Below, one piece after another: positions 498 to 61,981 of a stretch of DNA of 64,000 bases (its first letter is position 1; each line of letters starts with the position of its first letter). This DNA comes from Phallusia mammillata (lineage: Eukaryota): the NCBI GenBank assembly GCA_965637545.1, contig OZ281494.1, positions 3,968,001 through 4,032,000 of the forward strand, read 5' to 3'. A program made the position numbers and the translations under genes. The notes beneath the pieces were generated by a model. The model saw only the letters and a list, made by a program, of their open reading frames with translations, did no database searches and was not told the DNA's origin.

Positions 498-561
498 CTT
501 GCAAACTTGGTTTAAAGGAGACGACGGCCAGCACCACAAGTAGAGAAACAAAGGAGATCAT
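498..561 (-). CDS. Locus 0: signal-peptide exon 1 of an adhesion GPCR that continues beyond the left edge
   Basis: 64-nt exon ATG...CAAG|GT encoding MISFVSLLVVLAVVSFKPSLQ. Same length and phase as exon 1 of loci A, C, D, F and G. Confidence 0.75.
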
Positions 562-897
562 TCTGTCAACCACATGATTTCTGTAGAATACTTACGATTT
601 TGTAACACTGAGTCACCAGATTTTCACCAAATTTGGCATCACATTTATTGCAAAGGAAACCCACACAAAGTTGTGAACTGGGCCGAAAGTAAAAAGAAAT
701 TAAGACAGAAATAATACCAAGTGCGATCAGTTAACCCCCAAACAAACCCATACTGTTCTATTTATCGAATGTGGCCAAAAAACCTTGCCTGACTTTAAAC
801 CGCATAACAGAATCAAGACATTATGTATGTAGTGATTAATAAATTAACATAGTTGTGATGTTATGTTACATAGAAAAAACATTACGTCTAAGTTTAC

Positions 898-959
898 CTT
901 GCAAACTTGGTTTGAAGCAGACGACGGCCAGCATCAAGTAGAGAAACAAAGAAGCTCAT
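898..959 (-). pseudogene. Second, frameshifted signal-peptide exon upstream of locus 0
   Basis: Near-identical to exon 1 of the other copies but 62 nt instead of 64 (2-nt deletion). Preceded by the shared promoter-proximal sequence. Confidence 0.7.
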
Positions 960-2108
960 TTCCCAACTTGTTGTTTTCTGTAGTACTTACGATTTTGTAA
1001 CACTGAACCACCAGATTTTGTACAAAACCATTTTGCAACTGGTCAAATTAGACGTAATTACACTTTGTTAAGGCTTGCGACACAAACATGCAAAAAACAT
1101 AGTCATTCATGTGTAAACTACTTTTATTTCTACAAAATCATTTGAAACCAATGACAGCATTCGTCTTAGACTTAAACTGCCAGACCCACGGAGGTCCTAA
1201 ACTATTCACCTTGATATCACCTTGCATTGTATCTTTCTATTTTTAACTGACCGCAGCAACACCAGCCAGTAGCTATTCAATTCATTTATTTCGTTCACGT
1301 GCATATAGTAAGTAAGCAGTTTTGACACATTTAATGACAACGACGCAAACAAAAATGGATCAGCTGGAGCCACTAGTGGCCATTGCAAGTAGCTGACCCT
1401 ATCTATTTGAACGGTTAAATTTGGCACTGTTTATACAGGAATAAACAAGAAGGTAATAAAGGTCACAACAACGTTTGAAAATAGTAATAAGTTCTGTTCA
1501 TGTAATATCAACTCATTGCGAAGCGTTGTAAGTATAAAACAAAAGGTTCAACTTCCGGGGTCATGAGTCATGACACGAGTGTCAAAAGCATCACAACAAT
1601 TTCCTCGCAGCAATACTTGATTGATTACATGCAAGGCAGCTATGTACAAACACGAAAGCAAGACTGTATGAAAAACCTGATGCTTATTATCGGTTCTCCA
1701 CAGTTGGCCAAATCCACCTGCCTCCTGTAGCATGTTACCTATATGAATTGATTGTGAAGGTAAAATCAACTTTGAGTCAAGTCAGCAAAGGAGTTCAACA
1801 ACCTCTTCCTATCTTCGCTTTTTTCTGTGATGGTGCACTTCGTGGTCGTGGTTAAAACTTTATGAAATATATATTACTTGTTTACTTAAAAACGGTTTGT
1901 GTAACTTTCCTCCAATGTATGAGGAACGTTGTTAAATTTCAAACCCGATAAACAAAGGGCATGTTCAATATTACCCACTGGTTATTGCATCATGCTTAGT
2001 TTCTTCAACCTGGTCTTTGGGCTAAAACGGTTTACCTTAGGTTTAATATCTTGGTAGTTCAATTTTAGGGTCTTCAGTCATAACGAGTGCACAAATATCC
2101 CCCTAGAA

Positions 2109-2521
2109 CAGTGCTTCTCAACCTAATGGTCGCGACCCCCAAAGGGGTTGCCAAGCAATTCTGAAGGGCTCGCGAAGACGCAAAAAATTTTGGGAAAATT
2201 TTATTCAAACTTTCCCTGTGTCTTCTGTTCAGAGTTATAACTCACACAACATATTGATTTAGAATTCATCGTTTGCAAACATATAATCTTATACGATTGT
2301 GTTTTAGGTGTTTCTAAAATAAATACCACAAAATATTGAAAAGATTTATGGTGACATAGGCCATACCCACAATTTGAAAAGTTTTCTGTACCGCAAAGAA
2401 AACGTGACGTTCATAAACACATTATGGTAGTAAAACTTCTTAAATGTATTTGTAAAGGGTTTACGTTGTTTTAGGAAACAACTAAAGAGGTCGCAAAGTA
2501 AAAAAAAGTTAAGAACCACTG
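2109..2521. mobile_element. hAT MITE (CAGTG-ended) with 8-bp TSD
   Basis: Ends CAGTGCTTCTCAAC...GTTAAGAACCACTG; direct repeat CCCTAGAA at 2101-2108 and 2522-2529. Confidence 0.85.
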
Positions 2522-2672
2522 CCCTAGAACAATGTTAGGTGAGTACAAATACAAAAAGTTACAAGACTTAATCAAAAACGCCATTTGGACAAATCAGCCA
2601 TGTTTTACAACATTTAACCGATTCCGGGACGGACCAGAGGCAGCGTGTTGTTACGTCATAATAGAAAATAAC

Positions 2673-2849
2673 GCTTTTAGTAACGGTGTAGCTGCAGCTG
2701 GTTTATCATCTTTCCAACAATTGTGCCCTTACCTTTGTCGCGCTTTATAACGTCCCAACGTTGCGCAGCTATTTCCGGTTTGGTGAATATTTTAGCGCAA
2801 TTGTGCTGGTACGATTTGTATCACCGGCGAAATAAACTCAACTCAACTC
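2673..2849. repeat. Dispersed repeat, copy 1 (inverted copy at about 38921-39093)
   Basis: About 175 bp, highly similar to the reverse complement of 38921-39093, e.g. AATTGTGCCCTTACCTTTGTCGCGCTTTATAACGTCCCAACGTTGCGCAGCTATT. Confidence 0.8.
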
Positions 2850-5235
2850 GGTGACTTGGATGATTCACTTTCGTTCAAGACAAAATGATGTAATTTTGTG
2901 CACTAGCGTCGTCAAGCGGCAGAAAAATTTGAAAACAAAAACAGGTCTGTTGCAGTTTGCATGTCATTGTAATTAGTGATGCACCAAACCGCCTGAATGG
3001 GCAGGAACTTGGCCGAATGGTTTGGCGTGCCTGATCCATATACAGACATAAAAAACCTGACCGAGATTCGTCTCTAGGAGTGTCCTGGGTTCGAACCCGT
3101 ACAAAAATGGTGATCCGCCAAGAACCCGATTGAAAAGCATATTCTAAAACCTCTTTCTGATTCAGGTTTTTAACCATCAATGCATAAGCTTTGCTAAGCT
3201 TCCAATATTTTGCAGAAAACGTGACTTGTATTTTTTAGACGCAGCAATCAGTTAATTTATGATATTTCATCTTCGAGATATTGAAAGTTTTGGGATTAAA
3301 TGTATGCAATTAAAAAGTTCGGTTTCGGCCGGTTTTCTAAAAAATTCGAGCCGAAACCGAAACATTGGAAAACGGCATATTCGGCCGAAATGTTTCGGCC
3401 AACCGAAATATGGGTGCATCATTAACTGTAATGTGTTGGAATAATGTGGACAGTTTGGCAGAAACTTGGGCCAATTAGTCCGAGGCGTTACACTCATATG
3501 ATTCGACCTCAGGAGCGTCCTGGTTTCGAAACCCGTGAGAAAAGTGGACTTTAAAATTTAGGCAAAAATAGGGCAAAATATAAACATAATAAGAATGTGT
3601 TTACAGTGCACTCATATATTAACAAAGGTATAATTAGATGAGCAAAAATTGAACAAAATGTAATAAATTTGAGGCACGTTAAAATAAGAGCGATGACTAC
3701 AATCCAAATCCTGATCTTAAATGGTGTTTGTAGTTTGGCGTCGTTTGTCGACTTTGGCCTCTCAGGGTAAAAATGAAAATGTTTGAAATTGTTAATTGAG
3801 GAATTGCTAAAAAAAGATAGGAATCTTCGTTTAGATTGGAGTTGTTTGAAAACAATCAGTTGCTTTTGGTAGCACACATTTTAAAGTTTTTCGAATTGTT
3901 GACGGGCCTGTTAGAATGCTACACCATATACTAAATAGAAAATAACTTTCTCCAAAGCACGCTAGCCCTGTGGTATAAACTAAAATTGCCACAAAAGCCA
4001 TGGCAGAACATAAGATTAAATGACACGAAAGTTGTTTTGATTCCACCGATCCATTACAGAACAGACTTTCATCCATAGAGGAGGTACGTCAACGTAAAAC
4101 CGCATCTTAAAAGGTGTTTGTCTAGTTTGGCTATAGTTAATTAGGGTGGAAACGTGAATATTTTAAGGTGCCATTGAGGAATTGCTAAAATGATTGGAAA
4201 GCGCCGTTTTGATTGGATTTGTTCAAAAACATTTAGTTGCACACATTAAAAATGTCACTAGTTTTATACACACTCACACTTGTTTATTATCACGCTCTAA
4301 TGTCATGGTATCAGTGCAGTACAACGGGTCAAAAAGGCATGTGATATTCTGACAACATAACGCAACAACACAACATCGGTGGAGGAGCTATGGTTGAATG
4401 TGTCCTGTGTTTTCCTGATAATTTCCCGGGATCTTAATGTTAACTGGAGTCCAGAGAAGCCGAAATGGTAGGAAGTACACATGTTTTAGTTATGACATGA
4501 GAATACGTCAGTGTGTAAATAAGACAAAAACTCATTTAATTACAAAGTAAGATTACAAACATTGCAGTGAAATCAAATGCCAGACACACAGGAAGCATTA
4601 CAATACAAAAACAAGAATGCTTGCAAATGTCTACAGTGGAAAAACACTGGTGGCATCAAATGTTTGCTGGCAAAAACTAAATTCGTGTCTTTCCCACCAA
4701 GCAAAACCCAAATGTTTGTGGTTATAAGTAAAAAATAATCTTATATTAGCTAAACAATGTGTTCAATTTAAGGAATGTGGTTTCGTTGCCCGATGATTAC
4801 AAACTCATGTTTATGAACCATTTAAAATCTGCTTGTAACCAACCAATGCAAAATATAACGGAATTTACAGATGCAATGCTATGACACAAATAGTAACGAA
4901 ACGTCAAAGTCAAATCTGAAAACGAAACACACGATCTTTGCTTGATGATTATTCACTAAGTTGGGGTAACCCCTTAGAAGGCACTCAGCACTTGGGTGAG
5001 GGGCAAAGCAAGCATAAAAAAGTTCAACGTATAGTTTTTTCCAACGTTAACATTTATACAATACGATACAGTATCGAATAGCAAAATCCGACTTGGTGGT
5101 TTAGAGCTTCAACCAAATTTTATATTGTCTGAGACAACCAATGACAACCAATGACGCTTGCTCTTTCATAACATTGCACAACTGCAAACTAATTTTTTGA
5201 ACTTTCACCTCTTTTGCATATGCCTTATTTCTCTG

Positions 5236-8200
5236 CTACTGAGACCTGAAATCAGCTTCACGTTTGCACGTCGGCATTTTCTGTCTGATGTCGCCATCCA
5301 TGACGCAGTACAGCAGGAAGACGACGATTCCCTGCGATCCGTTCAGCAAGCTGTGGATCTACATAAACACCTCGTTCGAAATCTCGTTTACGATACCTGC
5401 AAAAACGATTTGTTGATAAAGCATAACCTTGAAAGTCCTAACACTGATGCAAATGTAAATGAAACTTGAAAAATTCACATGCACAAATATTACCTGTAAA
5501 GAAAGCCAAACCCCAAGTTCCACCAAGCATAAAGAAGAGCAAGATGAAAGACTTTGCAGCTCTCAAAGCATCTTCTGTCCCGGGATCTTCTCCTCTGTTC
5601 CGCATCTTCCTCGAGTGCAGCATCACATGTGTGATCTTTAGTATGATCATGGAGTTGATAAGGAGGACGAAAGCAAGAGGAGCGACGACCGTGGAGTAGA
5701 AGATCGGAGTACCGGGAGTCAACCAGCATCTGTCGTACTTTCGAACCTGAACAAATTTGTTGCATTGCTCGTACAATGATTGGGGCTTCATGTAGATGTC
5801 GAGGAGAAACCCCACAGCGAAGGATAGTCCCACTATCAATGCTGGAATGATCAACCGATAACCATGAAGATCTTAAAACGTTTTGACGCATTTTGGGTTC
5901 GAAACTTGACTGGAAACGAAGTTGCCATAAAGAGACGAATTCCTTCAACTAAAAACCACACTCCTGAAAACAAACAAATGCACCAGAACACATAATATAA
6001 GGCAATGCTTGTTACTTTATTTACCTGAAGACAGCAACAAATATTGATTGGCTGTTGTGTGAATCACACATGGAATCTCGTGCGTCACTGCAAGATCATG
6101 TGATATATTGACAGCGTGGAAAAGCAGAAGAGCCAATGACAAGCTGATTTGAACCGGAACCCGATCTCCGCTGTGTTTCGACTTGTAGAGGATTATTATG
6201 GTGGCGATCAGAAACACGACTGAAGTTTATTCTGTAGCGTAAGAGGTGATCTGAAACGAAATTTTGCATAAATGCAAGCAATTGTTTAAAAAATCACATT
6301 TAAATATTTACCTTGACCCCCTTTGGTATGGTGGTGAACTCGACAGCCAGTAAAACTGTAAACAAGGTAAGATGGTTGCACTTGCAGGTGACGTTGCCTG
6401 TTACGTCATCGGTGATTGTGACGCAACCACGATCCGAGTATTTTCTTTCCACTCTGTCGAAGAAGAGACAGATTGGTTCCAGTTTTTTTATCTTCAGGTT
6501 TTCGTGGGATATATTTCCCACTTTGATCAGCTTGCAGACCGTTTCTGGTGATGCTGGAGGTATGACGAAACTTGCCTCTCCAGGCAATTGATCGTTTATT
6601 TCATCGGTAGTTGATCGTTTGCGGCGTAAGCGCTTGAAGCTATCGGCATCCCAACCCACAATAGCAATGTAGGGTGTGTTGAACGTAGCTATGTACCGCG
6701 TTGTGGCCAATGAACCGGCTTCGATCTGTTGAGTCTGTGTAGTTTGTGTTGAGTTTATCTTGAAGACAAGCACCGCAATTATGATTTGTTTCACTCCATT
6801 TGTTTGCAGTGTAAAGTTGATGTGAGATGACCCAAGCTGAAGATTTGAGTTGTATGTTTCCTGGTTGATGTTGGTAACTACGATGTGCAGTTGAGCATCT
6901 CCGCTACTATAAGTGGTTCCGTTTGTTTGAAAATGATTTCGGGAAAAATTCTCAACTCGCATTTCGATGTTTTCTATTTCCCTCACACTTGCAGGATTTA
7001 AATTTGTCAACTCATCCAGGAATGAAGGATCTGGAACAAAACAATTCCATGGCAAGTTAGTGAAGCAGATATTTTAAGGTGTTTAGCGCTCTCCTGACAT
7101 TTTTAACCATGCAAATATTGCAAATGCAAACCGCAATGCCTTATTGCAATTAAAGTGAAAAAATACATCCCAGGCTGATCATAGTTTTAAACTGGTCAGT
7201 ATTTCAAACAAATAAACACAGAAAAGCAAAACTCCTGTGCTTTAGTTAATGATTTTATTAAATGTCCATAATATATGAGGTAAAGACGGAAACGGGTTCT
7301 TCACTACCTTGTTTGTTCCTAATTCCATTTAATGGGGTTTTGAAGTTAAGAACTAAATAATTTGATGTGAGTTGTAACGAATAAAGATCACTTCATGATT
7401 GTATACCGGTAATGGTCAGCTTAGATATAATTTATTTTCTAAAATATTGTTTTCCTCTACGTCTGGCAAACGTAGTGCGAGATTTAACAAGTTTGTGAAA
7501 CATGTCGTACACCGACTAATAACAACAAGAAATACCTTCTGGTATGGATGCATTTGCTATAATCTCAGATACAATATTTTTCAGGGTGTCACCAAAAGTG
7601 GCAAAATCGGCCAACAGTGTAACTGCGGTTTTAGCAACGGTTTGAAGTTCATAACACACAACGTCTGGTCCGATTCCAATGGCGTACACTGTAATGTTGT
7701 TGTTGCTCGTCAAATCGTAACTGTTGTAAGCAATGCAAGTGTTGTAGGTTTAATTGGTTAAGACTGGTGTTGATAGCAAAGTGTTGCAGTTACATAAAGT
7801 TTTCTTTCAGTCCTCTGTTTATGAAGACAATAAAAAAAGCTATTTTTTGGGAATTATTTTTAACGTATTTGTTTTTGTTGTGTAAAAAGAAAGGCAATGA
7901 CCGTGAGCATACACATGAATTCAATAAAATTGAAATAATTTTGATAAAGGTTGTCACTGGGGTGGATGTCGTAGCAACAATATGGTTACGAATAAAACGA
8001 AAAACAAAAAGACATTTAAAAACAAATATAAAATTGGTCATTACGCTAAATACTCACATGCTAGTCAACTCAACAGGGTTTGCTTTTCGGTATGTTGTAA
8101 GTATCAGAAATTTGTTGGAGGTTGCGGCGTTGGCTGAGCTTCTGAAATCTATCTATAAGAAGCTTTAAAGTTAAGAGCTTCTGCATTTTATATCCCGCTG

Positions 8201-9267
8201 AAACAACGCCTTACTTTGACAGCTCTCTCGATGGCGGTTCCGGTAAAAGCGTTTGTCCCAAAAGGCTAAACCATACTATTGTTTACAGCATCTTTGACAC
8301 AATGAACTGTAGTGCAATTTCCAAGAGTGGTTGGGTTGTGATAAAAGCTGTTCTCTTTGTAATCATGGCTGTCAAATAAGAATATAAAAAGTATTTATGT
8401 CAAAATCGGTGAACTTTTTCTCAAAGTAATTACAAAACCCTTTAGCACGTCGAAACTTATAACTACATGCTCTTAAAAATTGGTAAAGTAACTTTTAGGA
8501 AAAAACGCACATAACTTATTTATTTACTTGGAAATCTTGCCAACATCCAAAAATCCCGTCATGTTTTAATGCACTCCATAAAAACGAGACAAAAACGTTC
8601 ATGAGCAAATGAAGCGAACAAATATTAGGTATCTTATCTAAAACATCGCTCATGACATAAGCGTATTTTTCCAACTTAAAATGCCTGTTTTCTTCATGAA
8701 ACATTTAATAACACTTTCAAATAATTTGAAATGTAACAAACATCGAAATAGGAACTGGATAGTAAAATTAGTCATTTTTTATCTTTTATGCATGGACACT
8801 TAAAACAACGAACAAAAAATCTACAATCTTAATAAAATATAACTTAGTTTCTATCTTCGAAAACAATGCGTTAACAAAGGTAACAAAAATCTGGTAATCC
8901 TTGATAGTAATTCAATTAAACGCCTAATACGGCCGTAACCTCTATATATTTTCTTTCTTTAATTAAATTGTGCCACATAAATACGTTTTAGATTCGCAAA
9001 AGTCAACACACATCTTATATTAAGGATGTTGCAAACTGGGCCGAAGTTGGTTGGAAATTAGGACGGAAATGATAGTGAGAATTCAAATTCGAATTAAACC
9101 CGTTTTATTCAAATTTAAACTGGAAAGCCCGACCCGTTATAAAAATATAAACTGTCGCGTTAGTTCACATAAAGTATAGAAAAAACACCATGTTAGAGTT
9201 CACCTTGCAAACTTGGTTTGAAGCAGACGACGGCCAGCAGCACAAGTAGAGAAACAAAGAAGCTCAT
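5236..9267 (-). pseudogene. Locus A: VWA-GAIN-7TM adhesion GPCR pseudogene
   Basis: Exons 9267-9204 (SP), exon 2 deleted, 8368-8215 (TAG at 8266-8268), 8152-8058, 7720-7536, 7030-6312 (GAIN, CKCNHL|TLF), 6250-6025 (TAA at 6227-6229), 5963-5494 (470 nt vs 471 in paralogs; 1-nt deletion in the TM4 Trp codon), 5396-5236 (TAG at 5359-5361). Confidence 0.9.
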
Positions 9268-10053
9268 TTTCTTAACCTATTGCTTTCTGCAGAATACTTA
9301 CGATTTTGCAGCACAGAACTACCAGATTTTGTACAAAACCAAAATGTTTAAAACTGTGCTTAATATAGACGTAATTAAAATTTGTAAATAACACAAACAT
9401 ACAGAACACATAGTCATTCAGCTGTAAATTACTTAAATTCTACAAAATCACTTGAAACCAATGACAGCCTTCGTATTAGACTTACAATAGCAGATCGACA
9501 AAGCTCCTAAATCTTTTACACCTCGTTATCACCTTGCATCCCGTCTTACCATTTTCAACTAACCACAGCCACATGAGCCAGTATCTATATACAAGCACGG
9601 AAGCAACAAGATTGTATGAAAAACGCTGATTGTTATTATCAGTTCCCCACACTCGGCCAATCCACCTGCCGAATGCCGTTTGCAGCTCGTTATCCTTTGA
9701 TTGAAACTGTAAACAACACAGCAATTGCAATGATGATCCAGCATTTTGTACATAAATATGTTTTATTGCTGGCGGAATCGTCTATGTAAAACTCCTGGTA
9801 TTTAATTTAACAACGCGATTTTTTCATTTTGTGGGACTTTCTCAAATTAATCGCACATTGCTTTTGTACGTTTCGCAAAAAGGTTTTAAAATTGTACTGA
9901 CTCTAGACTCTAGAGTCTAGAGTAATAAAGTACATAGTCCAGAGCTTGATATTTCGATCGACGCTTAATGTTTTGTAAAGCGTTTAAAGTGTTCTTTGGT
10001 TTTATTGTGGTTCGAATCCGTATTTTTTTTACCTATTTATTTGTCTTTGACAG

Positions 10054-10128
10054 ATCCGACAACAGCGTTTACCAATAGCCAACCACTCTTGGAAGTTGCA
10101 TCACAGTTCAATGCATCAAAGATGTTGT
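10054..10128 (+). pseudogene. Isolated relic of VWA exon 3
   Basis: TTTGACAG acceptor followed by about 70 nt aligning to exon 3 of the VWA copies (ACCACTCTTGGAAGTTGCATCACAGTTCAATGCATCAAAGATG). Confidence 0.75.
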
Positions 10129-10225
10129 TATTTCGGTGGTTTCTCTTCCTGTTTAACTCTCCCTATTTCCCTTACGCGGGTGGTTAGCTTTTAGGTTTCA
10201 ACTCGACTGGTTCCACCAACGTTGC

Positions 10226-10290
10226 TTTTGTTTAGCATTACACCAGTTGAACGACAAATTTATTAAATATGCTACCTGGTGGACGAAACG
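10226..10290 (+). mobile_element. Relic of the same putative Penelope-like repeat as at 63.6 kb
   Basis: TTTTGTTTAGCATTACACCAGTTGAACGACAAATTTATTAAATA matches the reverse complement of about 63560-63605. It is followed by CTGGTGGACGAAACG, identical to the 3' half of the hammerhead motif. Confidence 0.6.
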
Positions 10291-10863
10291 CTTGTTCAGT
10301 ATTTTCCGATTATTATTAATGGAAAAATGAGCAGCAAAATAGGCACTATATCAAAACAAGCGTGTACACCTTGGCTCGTAAATTTGCCGCGTCTACGCTT
10401 CGATATTCCTAATTACTACTACGTAGCCAAGTGTTTTGACGAAACAAACCTACAAAACGACTCAAAATTTTTCGTAAAACAAACTCGGGTTGTATATATG
10501 ACGTCACAAATTAATATTGATAAAATCAAACTGTATGAAAGACGTAAAAAAGTAATTGGTGAGGTAAACACAATTATTGAAAATTTGTTACTGTATTTGG
10601 TGTCGCGACAAGGAAAGTCAAAGTTATCCACTGTTTCATGCAGATGTGCAAACCAGTATCAAAGCAATCCATTACGGTGTTCCAGCCGGAACAGTAAGTC
10701 GGGGCAGGCTTTGATTTGTTCAAAAAACTGTCGTGACTCGGGTCAGAATTTACATTCTGTGACTGTTTTTGCTGGACTTTACCTAATGTCCAACAGCCCA
10801 AAGAGGTTTTGTGTTGGCCATTGTCTATTATTATTTACCATTTTGTATGTATTTTTCTTATAG

Positions 10864-11302: not shown

Positions 11303-11324
11303 ATATATATATATATATATATAT
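11303..11324. repeat. (AT)n microsatellite
   Basis: About 11 AT units seen directly. Confidence 0.9.
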
Positions 11325-47487: not shown

Positions 47488-47555
47488 CTCGTATCACATC
47501 ACATGCACTGGTGTCAACATCACATGCTCTCGTATCACATCACGTACCATCGTAT
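47488..47555. repeat. About 21-bp minisatellite (CTCGTATCACATCACATGCA)
   Basis: About 3-4 degenerate units; orthologous to the array at 62782-62874 in the G 3' flank. Confidence 0.75.
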
Positions 47556-49683: not shown

Positions 49684-52600
49684 ATGAGCTTCTTTGTTTC
49701 TCTACTTGTGGTGCTGGCCGTCGTCTGCTTCAAACCAAGTTTGCAAGGTAAACTTAGACGTATTTTTTCTTGTATACCTTATGTAAACCTAACATACAGA
49801 ACCAGTTTACTTGCGGTGAGTGCAGAGTTGCAAATCGAGTCGTTGTTTTGCGTTTCATTTTGAATAAAACAGATTTGATTCTATCAATTCTTTCGGGTCT
49901 GACTTTTCATTATCATTTTTGTCGTACCTTTTTTTAAAATTTCAACCAAGTTTACAACATGTGAATTTACCTTATCAGCAGTGTGCCAAATTTGGTGATG
50001 TGTCTTATTGGAATTAATTAATAGAAGAAAAGTTTGTGCCTGGGAATTAGGCGTTTGCCAACCCTCTATAGAGGTGACGGCCGTATTAAGCGTTTAATTG
50101 AATTGCATTTAAAGATTAAGTAGTGTAAGAGATATTCAACCTTTGTTAACACATTGTTTTCGAAGATATAATTAAGTTATAGTAGTCCCAGAAAATTGGT
50201 GCAAAACCAAACATCTAATAGGTTTCTTGGTATAGCGGCTTTTTGATTGTTTGTTGTTAGTGAAGTGCGCTACTTATCTCCTAAATTATCTCCAGTTAGC
50301 TCCCTTTAACCTACTATTATTTTATTTTTTAGCTAAAGAAATCGACATTGTGTTTTTGGTGGACAGTACTATAGTACTGGTATACCACAATAACAACTTC
50401 TCAGTTTGCAACATACAAGAATGCTTTTGTAACAATGGCTGATGCCCTTGCACTGGGTTTTGCCAAAAACTTTTTGCAAGTCGCTATTCTTCAGTACGGA
50501 ACCAACAATTCAAGAAGGTAAATGTATTTTGTGAACCAAAAGCGTTGTTCGACCATCGAAAAGTCCTAAGTAGAACGTGGCGATTGAAACAATAGAAAAT
50601 GTTTAAAGGGGGCAATTTTAAGAGCTTTTATTTGAAGATTGTAGATTTTTGTACGTTGTTGTCCACGTATAAAAGATGAAAAATGACTAGTTTCACTATC
50701 CAGGAATTCCATTTTCGATGCTTGTTATATTCCAAATTATTTAAAAGCATTTTTACATGTTTAATGAAGAAAACAGGCATTTTAAGTCGGAAAAAAACGC
50801 TTATGCTCTAACGATGTTGTACATAAGGTACCTAATATTTGTTCGCTTCATTTGCTCATGAACGTTTTAGTCTCGATTTTATGTATTGCATTAAAACATG
50901 CCGGTAATTTTGGATGTTGACAAGATTTCCAAGTAAATAAATAAGTTGGTGGCTGTTAAAGCTGATAATAGTTACTTTCTAAAAGTTACTTTCTTTATTC
51001 TCAAACGCATGTAGTTATAACCAATAAGTTTCGAAGTGCCAAACGGTTTTGTAATAACATGGAAAAAATACACAGACTCAATGTAATGTTTTTGACATGA
51101 AACACTCTTTATATTTGTTTTTGACAGGCTTGAATACACCGACAACAAGTCTTATCACAACCCTACCACTCTTGGTGATTGCACTACAGTCCATTGTATT
51201 AAAGATGCTGTAAACAATGGTATGGTTCAGCCTTTTGGGACAAACGCTTTTACCGCAACCGCTATCGAGAGAGCTGTCTAAGTAAGGCGTTGTTTCAACA
51301 GGAATAAACGGCAAAAGCTCTTAACTTTAAAACTCTGTATAGATCGACTTCAACAACTCAGTTAACGCCGCAACTTCCAACAAATTTCTGATACTTACAA
51401 CATACCGGAGAGCAGACCCTTTTCAGTTGCATGGCAGGCGAGCATTTAGTGTGATGTTTAATTTTTATTTGTTCTTAAAAGTATTTATTTTGTTCTAGCA
51501 GAGGACTGAAAGAAAACTTTATTTGACTCCAACTCTTCCGTATCGAAAACAGTCGTAATCAATTAAACCTACAACACTTGTATTGCGTACAACAGTTACA
51601 TTTTGACATGCAGAAACAACATTACAGTGTACCCTATTGGAATTGGACAAGACGTTGTTGAAAGTGACCTTCAAGTCATTGCTAACAACGGAGTTAACAA
51701 CGACAGAGTTACACTGTTAGCCAATTTTACCACCCTTGGTGACACCCTGGTTAATATTGTATCGAAAATTATAGCAAATGCATCTACACCAGAAGGTAAC
51801 TTGTTGTTGTGATTAGTCGGTGTACGACATGTTTCTCAAATATGTTGAATCTTACGTCACTTTTTCATTAGCGCAACCACCAGACGCATAAGAAAATAAT
51901 ATTTTATAAACTAAATTATATCGGCTATGAAGTAATATTTGTTTGTCACAATCCACGTCGCTATATATAGTTCTTAACTTCAAGACCCCAGTAACCGGAT
52001 TTGGAAGCAGGCTAGGTGGTGGGGAACCAATTTAAATTTATGTTTAAACAAAACGGACTTGATACGCGCTTGTCCTTCACATTTGGGTCGTAACTTCACC
52101 GTGATTAATCCAACATTTAAACTCCCTTTGAACTTCGGTCTTTTGCCACAGGTTTTTGAGTAAATAAACTCAACCCAAAATGACCAGAGATTTTTAATGG
52201 GTTGAAATGTTCTTTCTGATATCTAATAATCTTATTATAAATTTATTATTACAAACATTGAATAAAATCATTAAGCAGAGCTCGTGAGTTTTGTTGTTCT
52301 GTGTTTATTCTTTCAGAAATACTGACCAGTTTAAAACAATAGCACAACCTTTTTTTCACTGTTTGCAGTTACGCATTGCGTTTTGCATTTGTAATTTGGC
52401 ATGGTTAAAACTATCGCTAAACTACTTACGATATTTGGTTCACCAACCTGTTATGGAATTGGTTTGTTACAGGTTCTTCATTTCTGGATCAGTTAAAAAA
52501 TGTAAATCTTGCAAGTGTGATAGAAATAGAAAACATCGAAAATCGAATTGAAAATTTTTCCCGAAATCATTTACAAACAAACGGAAGCACTTATAGCAGC

Positions 52601-54450
52601 GGAGATGCTCAACTGCACATCGTAGTTACCAACATCAACCAGGAGACATACAACACAAATCTTCAGTTGGGTTCATCTCATATCGACTTTATACTGCAAA
52701 CAAATGGAGTGAAACGAATCGTGATTGCGGTGCTTGTCTTCAAGATAAACGCAACACAAACTGCACAGACTCAACCTATAGAATCCGGTTCATTGGCTAC
52801 AACGCGGTACATAGCTACGTTCAACACAACCTACATTGCTATTGTGGGTTGGGATGCCGAAAGCTTTAAGCGCTTGCGCCGCAAAAGATCAACTACCGAA
52901 GAAATGAACGGTCAACTGACAGGAAAAGCAAGCCTCCAATTACCACCCCAATCACAAGCAACCGTCTGCAATCTGATCAAAGCGGGAAATATATCCCAAG
53001 AAAACCAGAAGATTAAAAAATTGGAACCAATCTGTCTCTTCTTCGACAAAGTGGAAAGAAAATACTCGGATCGTGGTTGCGTAACAATCACAGATAACGT
53101 AACAGGTAACATCACTTGCAAGTGCAACCATCTCACCCTTTTCACTGTTCTACTGGCTGTAGAATCCACCACCATACCAAAGGGCGTCAAGGTAAAGATT
53201 TGAATGTGAACTTTAACAAATGGCTAACAAAATAAACAACACGTTGTTGCAGATCACATCTTACGCCACAGAATCAACTTCAGTCGTGTTTCTGATTGCC
53301 GCCATAATAATCCTCTACAAGTCGAAACACAGCGGAGATCGGGTTCCGGTTCAAATCAGCTTGTCAATGGCTCTTCTGCTCTTTCACGCTGTCAACATAT
53401 CACATGATCTTGTCGTGATGCATGAGATTCCATGCGTGATTCACACAGCAGCAAACCAATATCTTTTGCTGTCTTCAGGTATACAGTACAAAATAACAGG
53501 GCAATTGAAATTTTAAGCATTGGTTTATATTCTGTGATTTGGCGCGAATGTTTTGTTTCAGGAGTATGGTTCCTACTTGAAGGAATTCGTCTCTTCATGG
53601 CAACTTCGTTTCCAGTCAAATTCCGAACCCAAAATCCGTCAAACCGTTTAAAAATCTTCATGGTCATTGGTTGGATTGTTCCAGTTATTGTAGTGGGATT
53701 ATCCTTTTCTGTGGGATTTCCTCTCGACATCTACATGAAGCCCCAACCATTGTACGAGCAATGTAACGAATTTATTAAGGTTCCAAAGTACGACAGATGC
53801 TGGTTGGCTCCGGGTACTCCGATCTTCTACTCCACGGTCGTCGCTCCTCTTGCTCTCGTCCTCTTAACCAACTTCATGATCATCCTGAAGACAACACATG
53901 TGATGCTGCACTCGAGGAAGATGCGGAACAGAGGAGAAGATCCAGGGACAGGAGATGCGTTGAGAGCAGCGAAGTCTTTTATCTTACTCTTCTTTATGCT
54001 TGGTGGAACTTGGGTTTTGGCGTTTTTCACAGGTACTATTTGTGCGTTTGTTACTTTTATATTTTTGAACGTTTTTATTTTCATAAGTTGCATCAATGCA
54101 AGGGATTTCGAAGGCTACTGTTTCACAAACTCATTACATTTGCAGGAATCGGGAACGAGATTTCGAACGAGGTGTTTATGTACATTCACAGCTTGGTGAA
54201 CGGATTGCAGGGATTCGTCGTCTTCCTGCTGTACTGCGTCATGGATGACGACACCAGACAGGAAATGCTGACGTGTAAGCGTGAAGCTGATGTTGGATCG
54301 AAGCAGCAGAAAAACGATGCTAAACCAAACAAAGGTGAAAGTTCAAATGCAGAAGGGGGTGAAAGTTCAAACGCTGAAGAAGGTGAAAGTTTAAACGCAC
54401 AAGGAGGTGAAATTTCAAATGCAAAAGGAGATGAAAGTTTCAACAATTAG
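49684..54450 (+). pseudogene. Locus F: VWA-GAIN-7TM adhesion GPCR with a disrupted VWA module but open GAIN-7TM exons
   Basis: Exon 1 49684-49747; exon 2 50333-50517 is 185 nt vs 172 (13-nt frameshifting insertion at about 50371); exon 3 51128-51281 ends in TAA (AAA in paralogs); exon 4 donor is GC (51438). The GAIN exon from 52473 and the 7TM exons are open to the stop at 54450. Confidence 0.85.
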
Positions 54451-54774: not shown

Positions 54775-55241
54775 GTCCGCGGGCCGGATCTGGCCCTCGA
54801 GGTCATTTCATCCGGCCCGCGACCACATTTTTTGGTTTGCCAAATCGTGTTGATAACTTTGTAACATTCAAAAATTAATCTACTCCTTACGAAAGTTTTC
54901 CTGTCGCGATATGTAGAATTGATATTACCTAGTTTCATAGGAATACAACTCTCAAGATTGATCCAAAGCCGGTTTGTTACGTCACAAATTGGACTACAAG
55001 TGTTAATTGTGTGCAAACAATTGCCTTATTTTGTTAGTTGTGACGTAATATACAAGCATTGCTCGTATGATGAGACCAGCTGTACAGTTTAACAGTCGCA
55101 TTACCAGATTTTGAATTAGATTGTGGAAAGACCATCTCTTGGTGCCCCTATAGAAATCGCTGGGGCATGTAAACTATGCGGCCCGCGCGAATCAATTTTA
55201 AACTTATCCGGCCCGCAGTGTAAAAAGTTTGGTGACCCCTG
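54775..55241. mobile_element. hAT-type MITE, left end eroded
   Basis: GGCCCGCG-type subterminal motifs at both ends and right TIR AAGTTTGGTGACCCCTG ending at 55241. Confidence 0.6.
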
Positions 55242-56236
55242 GTTTATATCATAGCTCCTCTTATATCACCGATGTTGTGTTGTTATCACATTACATGCCG
55301 TTTGACCCATTATACTGAGAACGACTACATTGATATAATGTTACATAAGCGTGATAATAAATGAGCAAATGTGTGTTAAACTACTGACGAAGTTAAAAAA
55401 AAACGTCTGTTTCTATTAGGCAACTGATTGTTTTTAAAAGAATCCAATCAATGCGGCGCTTTCCAACATTTTGTAAAGTGCCTCAATTAACAACATAATA
55501 CCCAACTAACCAAAGCCAATCTATAGTGTATAAGCAAACATCACTTAACACGCGGCTTTACATTGACATCTCGGCTCAATGGAAGAAAATTCTGTTTTAC
55601 AAACCACATAATGGATCAGTGGAAAGAAAACTACTTTCGTGTCGTTTAATCTTAAGTTCTTTTGTGGTGGCATTTTCAGTTTATACCACAGGGCTAGCGT
55701 GCTTTGGAGAAGGTTGTTTTCTACTAGGTATATGGTTTAGCATTCCAGCAGCCCGTCAACATTTCTGAATTAAAAAAAATGTGTTACTACAGGCAACTGT
55801 TTGTTTTTAACCAATCCAATCAACACAGCAATCCTCAATCTTTCATTAGCAATTCCTCACTTAACATTTTAAACATTTTTATCTCGATCAAGATTTGTTC
55901 AATTCTGTATGTGGGGCAGGCGCGCATGACCATTCGGCCTTTTGGGGCTGGTTCGGTTCATCAAAAAATTACAATGACAGGCAACCGCCACAGACCTGTT
56001 TTTGTTTTCAAATTTGTCTGCCGCTTGACGACGCTAGTGCACAAAATTACATCATCTTGTGTTGAACGAAGGTGAATCATCCAAGATGCTAAATTTTGAC
56101 GTAACAACATGATGAGATTTGCACTTGCGTTCACGAATCGGTCAAGTCTTTCAAAACATTGCTGATTTGCACAAAAGGTGTTATTTTGTTTAACAAAGTC
56201 TTGTAACTTTTGTACTCACCTAACATTGTTCTAGGG

Positions 56237-56477: not shown

Positions 56478-57251
56478 TTCAGTGGGATAAATGTGTGCAC
56501 TCGGTATGACTGAAGACACAAAAATTGAATCATCAAGATATTAGCCTAAGGTAAACCGTTTCAGCCCAAATACCAGGTTGGAGAAATCAAGCATGGTGCA
56601 ATAAACCAGTGAGTATTACTGAACATGCGCTTCATTTACCGGGTTTGAAATTTAACAACGTTCCTCATACATTGGTGGAAGTTACACAAATCGTTTTTAA
56701 GTAAAGAACTCATGTTTTTCACAAAGTTTCGCTCACGACCACGAAGTGCACCATCACAGAAAAAGCGAGTATGGAAAGAAGTTGGTAAAATAAGTTGCCG
56801 AACTCATTTGTTGACTTTAATTAAAATGCCTCAAAGCTTTTTTGTAACAATCAATTTCGTATTAACTTAGTAACAAGCTCCTGAAGACATACATATAAAA
56901 ATATGTGGATTTTGCCAACTGTGGAGAACTGATAATAAGAATCAGCGTTTTTCATACAGCCTGTTGCTTTCGTGCTTGTATATAGCTACTGGTTGGTGTC
57001 GGTGTGGTCAGATTAATATAGAATGACGCGATGCAAGGTGATATGGAGGTGAATAGTTTAAGAAATTTGTGGATCTGACAGGTCAAGTACACGCCGAATG
57101 CTGTCATTGGTTTTAAGTGATTTTGAAGAAACAAATTATAATTACGTCTAATTTGACCACAATTTTAAAACATATTTAGGTTTTTTACAAAATCTGGTGG
57201 TTCAGTGTTGGAAAATCGTAATATTCTGCAGAAAGCAATAAGTTGACAAAA

Positions 57252-60200
57252 ATGAGCTGTTATGTTTCTCTACTTGTGGTGCTGGCCGTCGTCTGCTTCA
57301 AACCAAGTTTGCAAGGTAAACTCGGCCATGGCGTTACTTCTATACCTTATGTGAACTTAACAAACACAACCAGTTTATGTTTTGATGGCAACATAATAGT
57401 GCCTTCTGGTGGGTGCAGAGTTAAATCGGGCCAGGTTTTCGAGTTTAAGTTTGAATAAAACAGGTTTAATTGTGGTTTGAATTCTCACTATCATTGGTGA
57501 CGTATTTCCCCCAATTTCGGCCCAGTTTGCAACATGTGAATTTCCTTTAAAATATGTGTTTGTTGACGAATTCAAATAAATTTATGTGGCACAATTCAAT
57601 TAAAAGAAGGAACATTTGCGCCTGGGAAAAATATCGTCATTTTAGTCTTAAATTGAATTGCTATTCAAGATTACAAAATAATGTAAGGGATGTTCTACCC
57701 AGAGTTGTAAAACAATCTTACTTTTTGAATAAATTTAATAGCCAGTTGCTGGACCTGACCTAATGTCAAACAGCCCTACAACACATTCATTAAGACCGAT
57801 TGCCTCTTGTTTTTGTTGTCTTGGTCTTTTTTGAGGCTTCAATGCATATGCCTGTCAATCAAACTTTCGGGCTTAAACGGGGTTCTTAAAAACGACTCGG
57901 GTTCGGCCCGGATTTCGGGTTTGTACTTTTGGGTTCGGGTCGCATTCGGGCTCCAATTTCAGGCGCGTTTATAACTCGGGTTCAATCTTTGTTAACTCAT
58001 TGTGTGGAAGATTAAAGTAGTCCCAGAAAACTGCTACCAATCCAAACAAGTTTCTTAGTATATCGGCTTTGTTATTGTTACGTTGCTAGTGGAGTGCCCT
58101 TCTTGTCCCCAATTTATCCCCACTTAGCAGTCTTTGACCTTATGTTTTGTTTTCAGCCCAAGAAATTGATATTGTGTTTTTGGTGGATAGTTATTTATTT
58201 CCTTATGCACGATATCAAAATGCTTTTGTAACAATGGCTGATGCTCTAGCACCGGGTTTTTCCCAAAACTCACTGCAAGTTGCTATTCTACTGTATGGAT
58301 CCAACGATAGAAATGGGTAAATGCATTTTGTGAACAAAAACGTTGTTCTGTCAGCTAAGTTCTACGCGATGTATTAATAACAAATGTTTTTACAGTTTTT
58401 TTTGTTTTTTTGAAAGCATTATGTTTAGTTATTTGTAAGAAACATGACGTTTCAGTTGGAAAAATGCACTCATGTAATAAACGTTGCTGACACCTGATGT
58501 TTGTTTACCTCAATTGCTCCAGTTTTTAGTCTCTTTCTTTTTTGCCTAATAATAAAACATACTGAAAATCAGTTTTAAAAATCATAGACAAAATATTTCA
58601 ACATAACCTGCAAGAAAAATACAACGACTTAATATAAATTTTTACGACACAAATACTTTCCATATTTTTATTTGACAGTCCTGACTACAGCGACAACGGC
58701 TTTTATTACAACCCTACCACTCTTGGAAATTGCACCACAGTCCAATGTATCAAAGATGCTGTAAACAATAGTGTGAGTTGGGATTATTGGAAAATCTCTT
58801 TTATCGCAACCGCCATCGAGAGAGCTGTCAAAGTAAGGTGTTGTTTTAACATAAATAAAAGCAAAAGCTCTTAACTTTCTTCTTATAGATCGACTTCAAC
58901 AACTCAGCCAACGCCGCAACTGCCAAAAAATTTCTGATTCTTACAACATACCGTTGGGCAGCAGACCATTCTCTTTTGCCTACCAGGTTAGCGTTTAGTG
59001 TGACGACCAATCTTATTTTTTGTTTTTAAATGTCTTTTTTTTGCTTTATTCGTATCCTTATCGTTTCTATGGCACCCACACAGATGCGTTTCAATCTTTT
59101 TCTCGAAAATGCCCAGATTATTATTTCAAGTGTAAGCCCAGTTTCATTGTAACAGCCATTTATCTTTTTGACAAGATGATGTTACAGATAGATTTTTGAC
59201 TTTTCGATTTTTGACAGACTTTTTGACAAATATGTTAAAATTAATTTCCAAAACAAAGATTTCAGATTGTCTTCATAAACGGGGCAATGCAGAAAATTTT
59301 TGTTAGTTTTTGTTTTGCAACCTCTTACCAACAACAGCTAAAACCAGTTAAGCTACATCGCATCTATTGTTTGTTATAGTTACGAGTTGACGAGCAGCAA
59401 CAACATTACAGTGTACGCCATTGGAATCGGACCTCAAATACCTAAAAGTGAGCTTCAAACTATTGCCAACAACGGAACTGGCAACGACAGAGTTACGCTG
59501 TTGAACAATTTTACTACCCTTAGTGACATCCTGGTTAACATCGTATCAAAAATTATACCAAATGTATCTATACCAGAAGGTAACTTCTTGTTGTTATTAG
59601 TCGGTGTACGACGTGTTTCTCTAATAAGTTGAATCTTGCGCCCGTTTGTCTTTACGTAATTGCTTATATATAAGCTAGCTGTAACCGGTACAAGATCAAT
59701 AGAAATCTTTATTTGTTACAACCCACATTGAATTGTTTAGTTCTTAAAGTCAAGACCCCAAATGGATTTGGAAACAATCAAGGTAGTGGGGAACCCGATT
59801 AAATTTATGTTCAAACAAAACGGGCTTGTTTCAGACCGGCCGTCCACATTTGGGTCCAAACTTCACCGTGATTAATTTAACATTTAAACCTATTTTGGTC
59901 ATTAGCCACAAGTTAATAAACTCGACCCACAATGGCCAGAGATTTTTAATGGTTTGGAAAGTTGTTGTTGTGGTTGTAGACTGATCCAATTCACTGACCA
60001 ATTCAAAAATATTCCAAAAGCCTGTAACGTCTTGCGTTTTTCACTGTTTGCAATCATGCGTTACGTTTTGCTTTTGCAATTTTTTGGATGGTTAAACATG
60101 TCAAGGGAGCGCGAAAATCCTTAAAATATCTGATTTATTAACCTGTCATGGAAATGTTTTGTTACAGATCCTTCATTTCTGGATCAGTTGAGAAATCTAA

Positions 60201-61981
60201 ATCGTGCAAGTGAGATGGAAATAGAAAACATCGAAAATCGAATTGAACATTTTTCCCGAAATCATTTACAAACAAACGGAACCACCTATAGTAGCGGAGA
60301 TGCTCAACTGCACATCGTAGTTACCAACATCAACCAGGAGACATACAACTCAAATCTTCAGCTGGGATCATCTCACATCGACTTTACACTGCAAACCAAG
60401 GGAGTTACACGAATCGTGATTGCGGTGATTGTCTTCAAGATAAACACAACACAAACTACACAGACTCAACCGGTCGAATCGGTTTCATTGGCCGCAACGC
60501 GATACATAGCTACGTTCAACACAACCTACATTTCTATTGTGGGTTGGGATGCCGATAGCTTCAAGCGATTAACTACCGATGAAATAAACAATCAGTTGCC
60601 AGGAAACGCAAGTTTCGTCATAACCCCATCATCACCAGAAACCATCTGCAAGCTGATCAAGGCGGGAAATATATCCCTTAAAAACCAGAAGATAAAAAAA
60701 ATGGAACCAATCTGTCTCTTCTTCGACAGAGTGGAACGAAAATACTCGGATCGTGGTTGCATCACAATAACTGATGACGTAACAGGCAACGTCACTTGCA
60801 AGTGCAACCATCTCACCTTGTTCACTGTTCTACTGGCTGTAGAATCCATCACCATACCAAAGGAAGTTAAGGTAAATATTTAAATGCGAACTTTTAAACA
60901 AGTGCTCACATTCATGCAACATTTTCATTCCAGATAACATCTTACGCCACAGAATCAACTTCAGTCGTATTTCTGATCGCAACCATAGTAATCCTCTGCA
61001 GGTCGAAACACAGCGGAGATCGGGTTCCGGTTCAAATCAGCTTGTCATTGGTTCTTCTGCTTTTCCACGCTGTCAACATATCACATGATCTTGCCGTGAT
61101 GCATGAGATTCCATGCGTGATTCAAACAGCAGCCAATCAATATCTTTTGCTGTCTTCAGGTATATAAAGTAATAGGACAATTTAAGTTCCAAGCATTGAT
61201 TTATATTATGTGATCTGGCACAATTGATATTCTCAGGAATATGGTTCCTCGTTGAGGGAATTCGTCTCTTTATGGCAACTTCGTTTCCAGTCGAATTCCA
61301 AACCCAGGATTCGTCAAAGCGTCTTAAGATCTTCATGATGATTGGTTGGATTATTCCAGTGTTTCTAGTGGGAACATCCTTTGCTGTGGGGTTTCCCCTC
61401 GACATCTACATGAAGCCCCAACCATTGTACGAACAATGTAACAAATTTATTAAGGTTCCAAAATATGACAGATGCTGGTTGGCTCTCGGTACTCCGATCT
61501 TCTACTCCACGGTCGTCACTCCTCTTGCTCTCGTCCTCTTAACCAACTTCGTGATTATCCTGAAGACGACACATGTGATGCTGCACTCGAAGAAGATGCG
61601 GAACAGAGGAGAAGATCCAGGGACAGGAGATGCGTTGAGAGCAGCGAAGTCTTTTATCTTACTCTTCTTTATGCTTGGTGGAACTTGGGTTTTGGCTTTC
61701 TTCACAGGTAATATTTGTGCGTTTTTTTTGAACATTTATCTTTTCATCAGTTGAATCAATGTAAGGGATTTCGAAGGTTATGATTTCACAAACTTATTAC
61801 ATTTGCAGGAATCGGGAACGAGATTTCGAACGAGGTGTTCATGTACATTCACAGCTTGGTGAACGGATTGCAGGGAATCGTCGTCTTCCTGCTGTACTGC
61901 GTCATGGATGACGACATCAGACAGGAAATGCTGACGTGTAAGTGTGAAGCTGATGTCAGGTCTGAGCAGCAGAGAAACTAA
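57252..61981 (+). CDS. Locus G: adhesion GPCR SP-VWA-GAIN-7TM, short tail, 749 aa
   Basis: Exons 57252-57315, 58157-58316, 58679-58832, 58889-58986, 59380-59579, 60168-60871, 60934-61159, 61237-61707, 61809-61981. The exons total 2250 nt in frame. Confidence 0.88.

Follow-up and report, generated by a model that had tools for sequence, protein, structure and literature searches.

Genes for adhesion G protein-coupled receptors (GPCRs) lie in a tandem array on the 64,000-nucleotide (nt) stretch of the genome of the ascidian Phallusia mammillata that was analyzed here (assembly GCA_965637545.1, contig OZ281494.1, positions 3,968,001 to 4,032,000 of the forward strand). This whole stretch, which is AT-rich with a G+C content of 35-42%, is referred to below as the window. 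With a probability of roughly 0.7, the array is a lineage-specific tandem cluster of adhesion GPCRs, that is, an ordinary fast-evolving family with a relaxed extracellular half, a description that fits better than that of a hypervariable recognition system. The proteins of the intact genes begin with a signal peptide and a single adhesive module; these are followed by a compact GAIN domain that carries an HL↓T GPCR proteolysis site (GPS; the arrow marks the cleavage point), then by a tethered agonist, a seven-transmembrane (7TM) domain and a short tail of variable repeats. The array has evolved by tandem duplication accompanied by the decay of copies, by gene conversion or unequal crossing-over between members, and by exon shuffling of phase-1 ectodomain cassettes.

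The window provides a base-level example of how a tunicate adhesion GPCR family grows through duplication, loss, exchange and cassette swapping on a GAIN-7TM core that is under purifying selection. Its genes also describe a minimal, single-module receptor in which ligand binding would lead to tethered-agonist activation and which may be of interest to specialists in adhesion GPCRs.

Architecture of the receptor array

Repeat finding and self-BLAST delimited a block of about 2 kilobases (kb), encoding the GAIN and 7TM regions, that occurs seven times in the window, once on the minus strand (A, ~5.2-7.1 kb) and six times on the plus strand (B to G, beginning near 13.0, 23.5, 34.0, 44.8, 52.4, and 60.1 kb). 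An eighth unit is represented by a 5' fragment on the minus strand (Z, 0.5-4.7 kb) that runs off the left edge. The size of the tandem unit is ~7.6-10.5 kb. The model of gene D was obtained by direct reading of frames and splice sites and its exons were then mapped onto the other units; these exon models are based on sequence only, except for the junction of exons 8 and 9, which was seen in a paralogue. AG/GT dinucleotides occur at all introns of B, C, D, and G. The loci are listed below (E1 to E9, exons 1 to 9; aa, amino acids).

Z, 498-4727, minus strand: 5' part of a VWA-type unit, cut at the left edge (self-BLAST to the upstream region of D, pairwise alignment and translation)
A, 5211-9267, minus strand: VWA-GAIN-7TM pseudogene; E1 9267-9204, E3 8368-8215, E4 from 8152, E5 7720-7536, GAIN exon 7030-6312, E7 6250-6025, E8 5963-5494, E9 from 5396; RRKRS at 6626-6612 and GPS CNHLT at 6380-6366, with a Pfam GPS match
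B, 11956-14974, plus strand: open gene of 7 exons and 676 aa, signal peptide, SUEL/rhamnose-binding lectin, GAIN, 7TM; exons 11956-12031, 12411-12504, 12685-12896, 13090-13829, 13891-14116, 14195-14665, 14763-14974; SRKRS at 13515-13529
C, 21001-25397, plus strand: open gene of 9 exons and 771 aa, signal peptide, VWA, GAIN, 7TM; exons 21001-21064, 21660-21831, 22328-22481, 22541-22653, 22989-23188, 23550-24253, 24314-24539, 24617-25087, 25186-25397
D, 31347-36087, plus strand: open gene of 9 exons and 827 aa with Pfam GPS, 7tm_2 and VWA matches; exons 31347-31410 (signal peptide), 32006-32177, 32674-32827, 32887-32999 and 33335-33534 (VWA), 34072-34775 (704 nt, whole GAIN; GPS CNHL↓T at 34707-34721), 34836-35061, 35139-35609 and 35708-36087 (7TM and tail)
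E, 44902-46732, plus strand: GAIN-7TM pseudogene without recognisable ectodomain exons; GAIN exon 44902-45619, then 45681-45906, 45990-46460, 46560-46732; RRKRS at 45306-45320
F, 49684-54450, plus strand: VWA-GAIN-7TM pseudogene with E5 to E9 open; exons 49684-49747, 50333-50517, 51128-51281, 51343-51437, 51596-51795, 52473-53191, 53253-53478, 53562-54032, 54146-54450; RRKRS at 52877-52891
G, 57252-61981, plus strand: open gene of 9 exons and 749 aa; exons 57252-57315, 58157-58316, 58679-58832, 58889-58986, 59380-59579, 60168-60871, 60934-61159, 61237-61707, 61809-61981

The disrupted copies differ in their lesions. In A, exon 2 is absent, exons 3, 7, and 9 contain stops and exon 8 has lost 1 nt. 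The GAIN exon of E contains a stop, and its frame is shifted directly behind CNHLT, at the GPS; homology of this locus to D starts only 46 nt ahead of the GAIN exon (self-BLAST) and no Pfam domain was found on the open reading frames upstream of it. The lesions of F are a frameshift of +13 nt in exon 2 (VWA loop 1) and a stop where exon 3 ends, and its exon 4 has a GC donor. The exon 1 region of Z is a small internal duplication in which the signal-peptide exon occurs twice at a distance of ~400 nt, the upstream copy (959-898) having a 2-nt deletion and the downstream one (561-498) being intact (MISFVSLLVVLAVVSFKPSLQ); exon 2 of Z was not found within positions 1-497. An earlier, sequence-only reading of this DNA had counted eight loci, four open, three disrupted and one cut by the window edge, and both the count and the coordinates hold against the exon models and self-BLAST. 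The limits that it set, 498 and 61981, are exactly the donor end of the second signal-peptide exon of Z and the stop codon of G.

On the long open frames of the repeat block Pfam recognizes the GPS motif (1e-9) and 7tm_2 (E of 1e-16 to 1e-18 on single exons), and on frames upstream of or between the units it recognizes VWA, SUEL_Lectin, and protein kinase domains. The exons jointly span transmembrane segments (TM) 1 to 7, with WxxxEG (TM3), GGTW (TM6), and QG (TM7) read directly. CNHLT was located in all seven GAIN-7TM copies. Because Pfam recognizes only the GPS motif in the exon-6 product, the Pfam GAIN model itself giving no match, this product was aligned and folded. In the alignment with 14 relatives the GPS residues C182, C197, C210, C212, H214, and L-T are invariant or nearly so. 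The AlphaFold2 model, of moderate confidence (predicted local distance difference test, pLDDT, 66; predicted template modeling score, pTM, 0.68), consists of two N-terminal helices followed by a beta sandwich, and its best eight Foldseek matches in the PDB are all GAIN domains (CELSR1, CD97, GPR110, BAI3, and latrophilins; probability 1.00, E of 3e-5 to 9e-4, TM score ~0.45-0.48). With a 7TM domain, a GPS and a predicted GAIN fold, the proteins of the array are adhesion GPCRs (class B2). The predicted tethered agonist that follows HL↓T reads T(L/V)FTVLL(A/T)V, is represented in relatives by T.F(A/T)VLL, and is conserved throughout. The 7TM domain is of the secretin type and, by sequence comparison, appears to be most like the ADGRG group: the solved structures nearest to the TM3-6 exon are ADGRG2 and ADGRG6, and the vertebrate proteins nearest to a Phallusia relative are ADGRG6 (26-28% identity; E of ~1e-6 to 1e-18 across the ADGRG matches).

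The furin-type site and the length of the cytoplasmic tail vary between copies. RRKRS is found in A, E, and F; B has SRKRS instead, and C, D, and G have lost the site through a 15-nt deletion, a perfect RRKRS surviving in the window only in the three pseudogenes. The site is considered ancestral because the Phallusia protein P0001 also has it (SLRRKRST); in the fold model it falls in a low-confidence loop (residues 133-142). Tail length is set by a 24-nt repeat that D has in ~8 copies and F in 4.5; B and C have ~1 copy each, and E and G lack it. Tandem Repeats Finder located the following arrays of this repeat.

35893-36100, plus strand: 24-nt tandem repeat in the cytoplasmic tail of D, ~8 copies, encoding (GESSNAEx)n
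54333-54439, plus strand: 24-nt tandem repeat in F, 4.5 copies

The ectodomain is a VWA domain encoded by four exons in C, D, and G, and a SUEL/rhamnose-binding lectin encoded by two exons in B. As read directly, the signal-peptide exon of every gene has a phase-1 end and the GAIN exon a phase-1 start; since both types of cassette are bounded by phase-1 introns, VWA and SUEL are interchangeable without loss of frame. Homology of B to the other units starts only ~50 nt ahead of its GAIN exon (self-BLAST). This gene has its own signal-peptide exon, and its SUEL exons, which encode eight cysteines, match Pfam SUEL_Lectin (5.8e-8) and are nearest to free rhamnose-binding lectins (3.6e-17, compared with 5.6e-4 for the lectin domain of latrophilin). 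Locus B was also considered as a latrophilin, and this was ruled out: its 7TM is 89-91% identical to that of its VWA-type neighbors and its lectin is nearer to free lectins.

Among the VWA exons, exon 2 matches the VWA domain of collagen VI alpha-3 (4.5e-9) and exon 5 the A3 domain of von Willebrand factor (vWF), and Pfam VWA matches both ends of the domain. The metal ion-dependent adhesion site (MIDAS) is degenerate in all copies: DxSxS is replaced by DSTSP in C and D and by DSYLF in G, and TDG by LILTTH or LILTTY. Differences between the VWA sequences cluster in three stretches which correspond to three loops of the MIDAS face (DSTSPITNSQFAIYKN vs. DSYLFPYARYQN; NNNMYQFLYSSAF vs. NNSVSWDYWKISF; LILTTHRLATYGW vs. 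LILTTYRW), two of which also differ in length: compared with D, loop 1 of G is shorter by 4 aa and loop 3 by 5 aa. The kinds of variation that the sequence-only reading had listed, namely ectodomain type (Pfam, gene models), VWA loop sequence (the three MIDAS-face loops), furin site and tail length (motif coordinates, repeat counts), were all recovered. The GPS, tethered-agonist and 7TM motifs of the shared chassis are conserved as it had proposed, and its view of the ectodomains as interchangeable modules is supported by the phase-1 cassette boundaries.

By analogy with other adhesion GPCRs, these receptors would cleave themselves at HL↓T and the VWA or lectin module may bind an extracellular matrix, cell-surface or glycan ligand. 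Binding of the ligand, or a mechanical pull, would expose the tethered agonist, leading to activation of the 7TM domain and of a G protein. Because the metal-binding motif is degenerate, integrin-style metal coordination is unlikely in any binding by the VWA domain; the motif is uninformative on the identity of the ligand.

Divergence and selection between copies

With the C/D pair left aside, the copies share 85-92% of nucleotides over the GAIN exon and 85-97% over the 7TM exons. At the amino-acid level the intact genes are 73-74% identical across VWA (C or D vs. G), 77-87% in GAIN and 89-95% in the 7TM (C/D aside), and exons are better conserved than introns nearly everywhere. The description of the GAIN/7TM exons as nearly identical was overstated at these amino-acid identities and applies only to C and D.

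Between D and G the ratio of nonsynonymous to synonymous substitution rates (dN/dS, Nei-Gojobori) is 0.59 for the ectodomain, 0.55 for GAIN and 0.29 for the 7TM; other pairs agree and all domains have values below 1. In Fisher tests the ectodomain is indistinguishable from GAIN (p = 1) and modestly above the 7TM (p = 0.02). Purifying selection is strongest on the 7TM. That the GAIN-7TM half is conserved merely through homogenization was considered and rejected, as dS in the 7TM (0.19-0.25) is about that of the ectodomain (0.29, D vs. G) and it is dN that differs. In the D vs. G comparison the ectodomains show no sign of diversifying selection, their value of 0.59 not differing from that of GAIN. 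The sequence-only reading had taken an ectodomain dN/dS no higher than that of GAIN/7TM as evidence against itself; this was found in relation to GAIN but not in relation to the 7TM, where the ectodomain value is the higher one.

Exons 2 and 3 are 73-77% identical between D and G and their flanking introns 57-68%, whereas from intron 3 onward exons and introns are both 89-95% identical. Because the flanking introns have diverged more, the distance between D and G in exons 2 and 3 is put down to the age of this 5' part and to its mosaic ancestry, and not to a faster evolution of the exons.

Several points weigh against an ordinary fast-evolving cluster. The differences between VWA domains concentrate in three loops of the ligand face, with a dN/dS of ~0.9 and in-frame changes in length, a pattern that could be produced by diversifying selection diluted by averaging. 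In the D vs. G comparison the loops have a dN/dS of 0.93 and the framework 0.37; the loops were chosen after viewing the alignment and, because they were picked after the differences had been seen, this contrast is biased upward and is not a fair test. The selection test is low-powered and site models are precluded because there are two independent intact VWA sequences in the window. In addition, C and D could be an assembly duplication.

Data from other individuals add to these points. The presence of D in DNA sequencing runs was scored by 31-letter words of the gene. Runs of five studies with the same species label carry part of gene D and four runs, from two of these studies, carry at least half of its words; because DNA runs of other individuals have only 46-71% of these words, the locus exists in other individuals and is polymorphic. 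In one of the runs (X1) 990 contigs fit gene D at a likeness of at least 90%, and summed depth is ~420-680 over introns 1-2 and 19,000-32,000 over the last 7TM exons. Such depths, which are a rough hint and not a copy number, hint at dozens of further copies at least 90% alike in the 7TM exons in the X1 genome. Over the last 7TM exon (35647-35807) the depth in X1 is ~50-70 times that over introns 1-2 of D.

Finally, no RNA-labelled contig matches B, C, D, or G at 99% or more. In one such contig (X12, 90% alike) the end of exon 8 is spliced to exon 9 where the models place the junction, and another (X16, 95% alike) reads into intron 8; because they are only 90-95% alike, both derive from paralogues and not from these genes.

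It is unlikely that the array constitutes a diversified recognition-receptor system, directed at microbes, self/non-self or a substrate, in which positive selection and cassette exchange act on the ectodomain and a common GAIN-7TM half relays the signal. Such a system would agree with the birth and death of copies, with the presence of two ectodomain types on one chassis, with polymorphism of the locus between individuals and the rough indication, from summed depth, of many more copies at least 90% alike, and with the changes and in-frame length differences of the three MIDAS-face loops (0.93 vs. 0.37 for the framework). The loop set, however, is post hoc and its contrast biased upward, dN/dS is below 1 in every domain with the ectodomain equal to GAIN (p = 1), identity is higher in exons 2 and 3 (73-77%) than in the introns that flank them (57-68%), which is the opposite of faster exon evolution, and these copies have no RNA contig at 99% or more. 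Of the variable recognition-receptor system proposed in the sequence-only reading, the turnover, the modular ectodomains and the shared signaling core stand and are sharpened by the evidence that copies exchange sequence; its functional part is not supported, dN/dS being below 1 everywhere.

A narrower version, in which the VWA-type members form a polymorphic recognition family of fast turnover, is quite unlikely as well. In this version the metal-free VWA loops would be hypervariable contacts, and VWA, SUEL and perhaps C-type lectin modules would be shuffled ahead of a common tethered agonist and 7TM; if true, the family would parallel, with GPCRs, the receptor families of immune or allorecognition type in other invertebrates. 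Diversifying selection on the loops, if true of the whole family, would make the array a candidate recognition system in the group that is sister to vertebrates, and the present data fall short of that.

Sequence exchange, status of the copies and neighboring features

Exchange between members is most evident in the C and D units, which align over ~10 kb with identities of 92-97% upstream, 94-97% in the 7TM exons, and 60-90%, with many indels, past the stop. This alignment includes the following feature, which we read as a recent gene-conversion or unequal-crossover tract.

20238-24312 (C) vs. 30584-34834 (D), plus strand: near-identical tract of 4.1 kb, 99.7% identical including introns (sliding identity)

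In the GAIN-7TM block the maximum chi-square method divides the C vs. D comparison into segments with 0.2% and then 4.6% mismatches (permutation p = 0.002) and that of B with C or D into 13.5% (GAIN half) and then 5% (7TM half; p = 0.001); several other pairs are also significant mosaics. Trees conflict between the GAIN exon, which gives (G,(C,D)), and the 3' exons, which give (B,(C,D)), each with a support of ~0.99. The intron 6 sequences of {A,G} cannot be aligned with those of {B,C,D,E,F}, and this grouping crosscuts the relationships of the exons. Gene conversion or unequal crossing-over between members is well supported on account of these mosaics, conflicting trees and intron 6 groups. 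The rapid turnover of the array noted in the sequence-only reading is borne out by the three pseudogenes among seven complete loci and by the recent duplication of C and D.

The four sites of the tract that distinguish C from D (32166, 32778, 32950, and 32964), all within VWA exons, show only the C-type letter in DNA run X1, where their depth is not below that of neighboring shared contigs. X1 comes from an individual other than the assembled one (it has 71% of the D words), and rare variants are lost from contigs; the assembled individual may be the only carrier of the D-type letters.

It is distinctly improbable that the assembly has placed uncollapsed allelic haplotypes in tandem as if they were separate copies, C and D being the foremost candidates. 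Over ~8 kb, with introns and upstream sequence counted, these two units share 97% identity, which is within the allelic divergence of ascidians, there is an assembly gap elsewhere in the array, and X1 has the C-type letter only at the four sites at a depth no lower than the shared flanks, although the run is from another individual and rare variants are dropped from contigs. No gap separates C from D, however, and their patchy identity (99.7% in the core, 92-97% in the flanks and 60-90% with indels downstream) is typical of conversion. A repeat expansion of 168 nt sets their tail exons apart. Because B, C, and D have homologous downstream regions, each copy sits in its own unit. The remaining copies cannot be alleles because of their exon (8-15%) and intron (20-45%) differences and their distinct lesions and ectodomains; most copies are therefore not allelic haplotypes, a possibility that the sequence-only reading had raised against itself, since all but C and D are too divergent.

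Very little credence can be given to the array being a decaying relic, wholly non-functional with four open frames merely not yet disabled: three of the seven complete loci are pseudogenes and these copies have no transcript match, but the open frames extend for 676-827 aa over 7-9 exons with all splice sites intact, the 7TM dN/dS between intact copies is 0.2-0.3 at a dS of 0.15-0.25, exons are consistently better conserved than introns, and a ~90% alike paralogue is transcribed and spliced at the exon 8/9 junction (X12).

A kinase-like gene is embedded in the array.

39843-41500, plus strand: kinase-like gene between D and E, open 5-exon model of ~380-424 aa, with uncertain splice choices at exons 2 and 5

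It matches PK_Tyr_Ser-Thr (1.3e-16) and Pkinase in Pfam, and a sequence search of the PDB gave generic kinase matches only. The lysine is kept in VVIK, HNAIRPRN replaces HRD, DFS replaces DFG, and a glycine-rich loop (GxGxxG) is missing. Since HRD reads HNA the catalytic aspartate is lost, and the protein is predicted from its motifs to be catalytically inactive; the pseudokinase that the sequence-only reading had placed inside the array is a fair interpretation of these losses. Nothing in the data links this gene functionally to the receptors.

The arrangement of the units is completed by two further features.

48193-48392, no strand: assembly gap of 200 N, intergenic between E and F, ~1.46 kb after the stop of E (46732) and ~1.29 kb before the start of F (49684)
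63071-63509, plus strand: segment with homology to where the D and F units begin (81% identity to D 28076-28545; self-BLAST)

The flanks of the gap (47799-48075 and 48393-49142) match 28070-28374 and 29659-30537 of the D unit with order and orientation kept (self-BLAST), and ~1.3 kb of the D unit is without counterpart there. No exon lies within 1.2 kb of the gap and no reading frame is affected. E and F are treated as neighbors only as assembled, and copies may be missing at this point. The segment at 63071-63509 is probably the upstream part of a ninth unit past the right edge, in which case the array continues there.

Loci A (minus strand) and B (plus strand) lie head to head, with 2.7 kb between their start codons (9267-11956), and all other neighbors are head to tail; an inversion breakpoint is therefore placed in 9267-11956. 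A 198-aa open frame between A and B (10267-10860) has no Pfam match.

A dispersed repeat of ~170-660 nt, with copies 69-89% alike and in both orientations, closely flanks the receptor units on their downstream and upstream sides. It may be a short mobile element that gives substrates for unequal crossing-over. Its copies are the following.

4094-4727
15418-15907
18670-18944
25845-26343
29055-29326
36739-37233
38220-38395
55223-55469

A 21-nt tandem repeat (TGCACTCGTATCACAT(T)CACA) occurs at 47484-47543 (3 copies) and 62778-62874 (4.7 copies), ~0.8 kb past the stops of E and G; its presence after both genes marks the homologous 3' flanks of these units. Searched against Rfam at gathering scores, the whole window gave no match. 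A minimal hammerhead ribozyme had been proposed at 63637-63682 (minus strand), and no hammerhead family of Rfam was matched up to E = 10 in 63400-63900.

Relatives and known receptor systems

An HMMER scan with the GAIN exon found only six relatives below 1e-10. The closest is a Phallusia mammillata protein annotated as 'ADGRD1-like' (P0001), 61% identical over the GAIN exon, and a Clavelina protein is among the next matches. In another Phallusia relative the GPS-7TM region is preceded by a weak C-type lectin match below threshold (E of 0.003; 18.7 bits vs. a cut-off of 22.6). In Clavelina lepadiformis (L002, 10001-20170) two tandem GPS-7tm_2 genes of the same broad family encode 808 and 724 aa, and their N-termini (~440 aa) have no Pfam match. 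A related 3.2-kb contig (L001) shows the GAIN exon followed by the TM1-2 exon, the same arrangement as in the array, with no recognisable VWA exon upstream. None of the five matches obtained in a database search with P0001 has a VWA domain, and no description of a VWA domain on an adhesion GPCR (VWA-GAIN-7TM) was found in the literature searched, which is no proof of absence.

The nearest described counterpart is found in Ciona intestinalis, which has 30 adhesion GPCRs, 24 of them 'unclassified' and probably ascidian-specific or fast-evolving, with 21 of these 24 models having only a GPS in the N-terminus (Kamesh et al., 2008; PMC2396169). The array resembles this unclassified set in being lineage-specific, fast-evolving and without vertebrate orthologues, and both have many members for the genome size, recent duplicate pairs and short GPS N-termini. 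It differs in the VWA or SUEL lectin ahead of GAIN, and that study makes no mention of VWA; nor does it describe tandem structure, pseudogenes or sequence exchange between copies (PMC2396169), all of which are described here for the array. To call the system 'undescribed', as the sequence-only reading did, was an overstatement, as ascidian-specific expansions of adhesion GPCRs had already been described (PMC2396169).

Among vertebrate receptors, ADGRG6/GPR126 and ADGRG2 are the best 7TM matches of the array, in solved structures and in vertebrate proteins. The identity is only 26-28%, the array proteins are without CUB, PTX, SEA, or PLL domains, and their GAIN is far more compact, with two N-terminal helices in the model. 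The GPR126 ectodomain has a furin site besides the GPS, as in the ancestral RRKRS form of the array. Latrophilins (ADGRL) share with B an N-terminal SUEL/rhamnose-binding lectin before GAIN-7TM, whereas B is without olfactomedin or HormR domains and its 7TM is of the array's own type; because its lectin is far closer to free lectins than to that of latrophilin, this module was probably acquired independently by exon shuffling. By exon matches the VWA domain of the array is similar to those of collagen VI and vWF; from these and from the I-domains of integrin alpha chains it differs in its degenerate metal-binding motif.

Amphioxus also has expansions of adhesion GPCRs with shuffled N-terminal domains (PMC2246102), which are comparable to the array in consisting of lineage-specific paralogues that mix and match ectodomains on related GAIN-7TM halves. 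The VWA and SUEL cassettes, the recent C/D conversion tract and the embedded kinase-like gene are the array's own. The array belongs to a known type, the lineage-specific tandem expansions of adhesion GPCRs of invertebrate chordates, of which it is a member with a VWA ectodomain.

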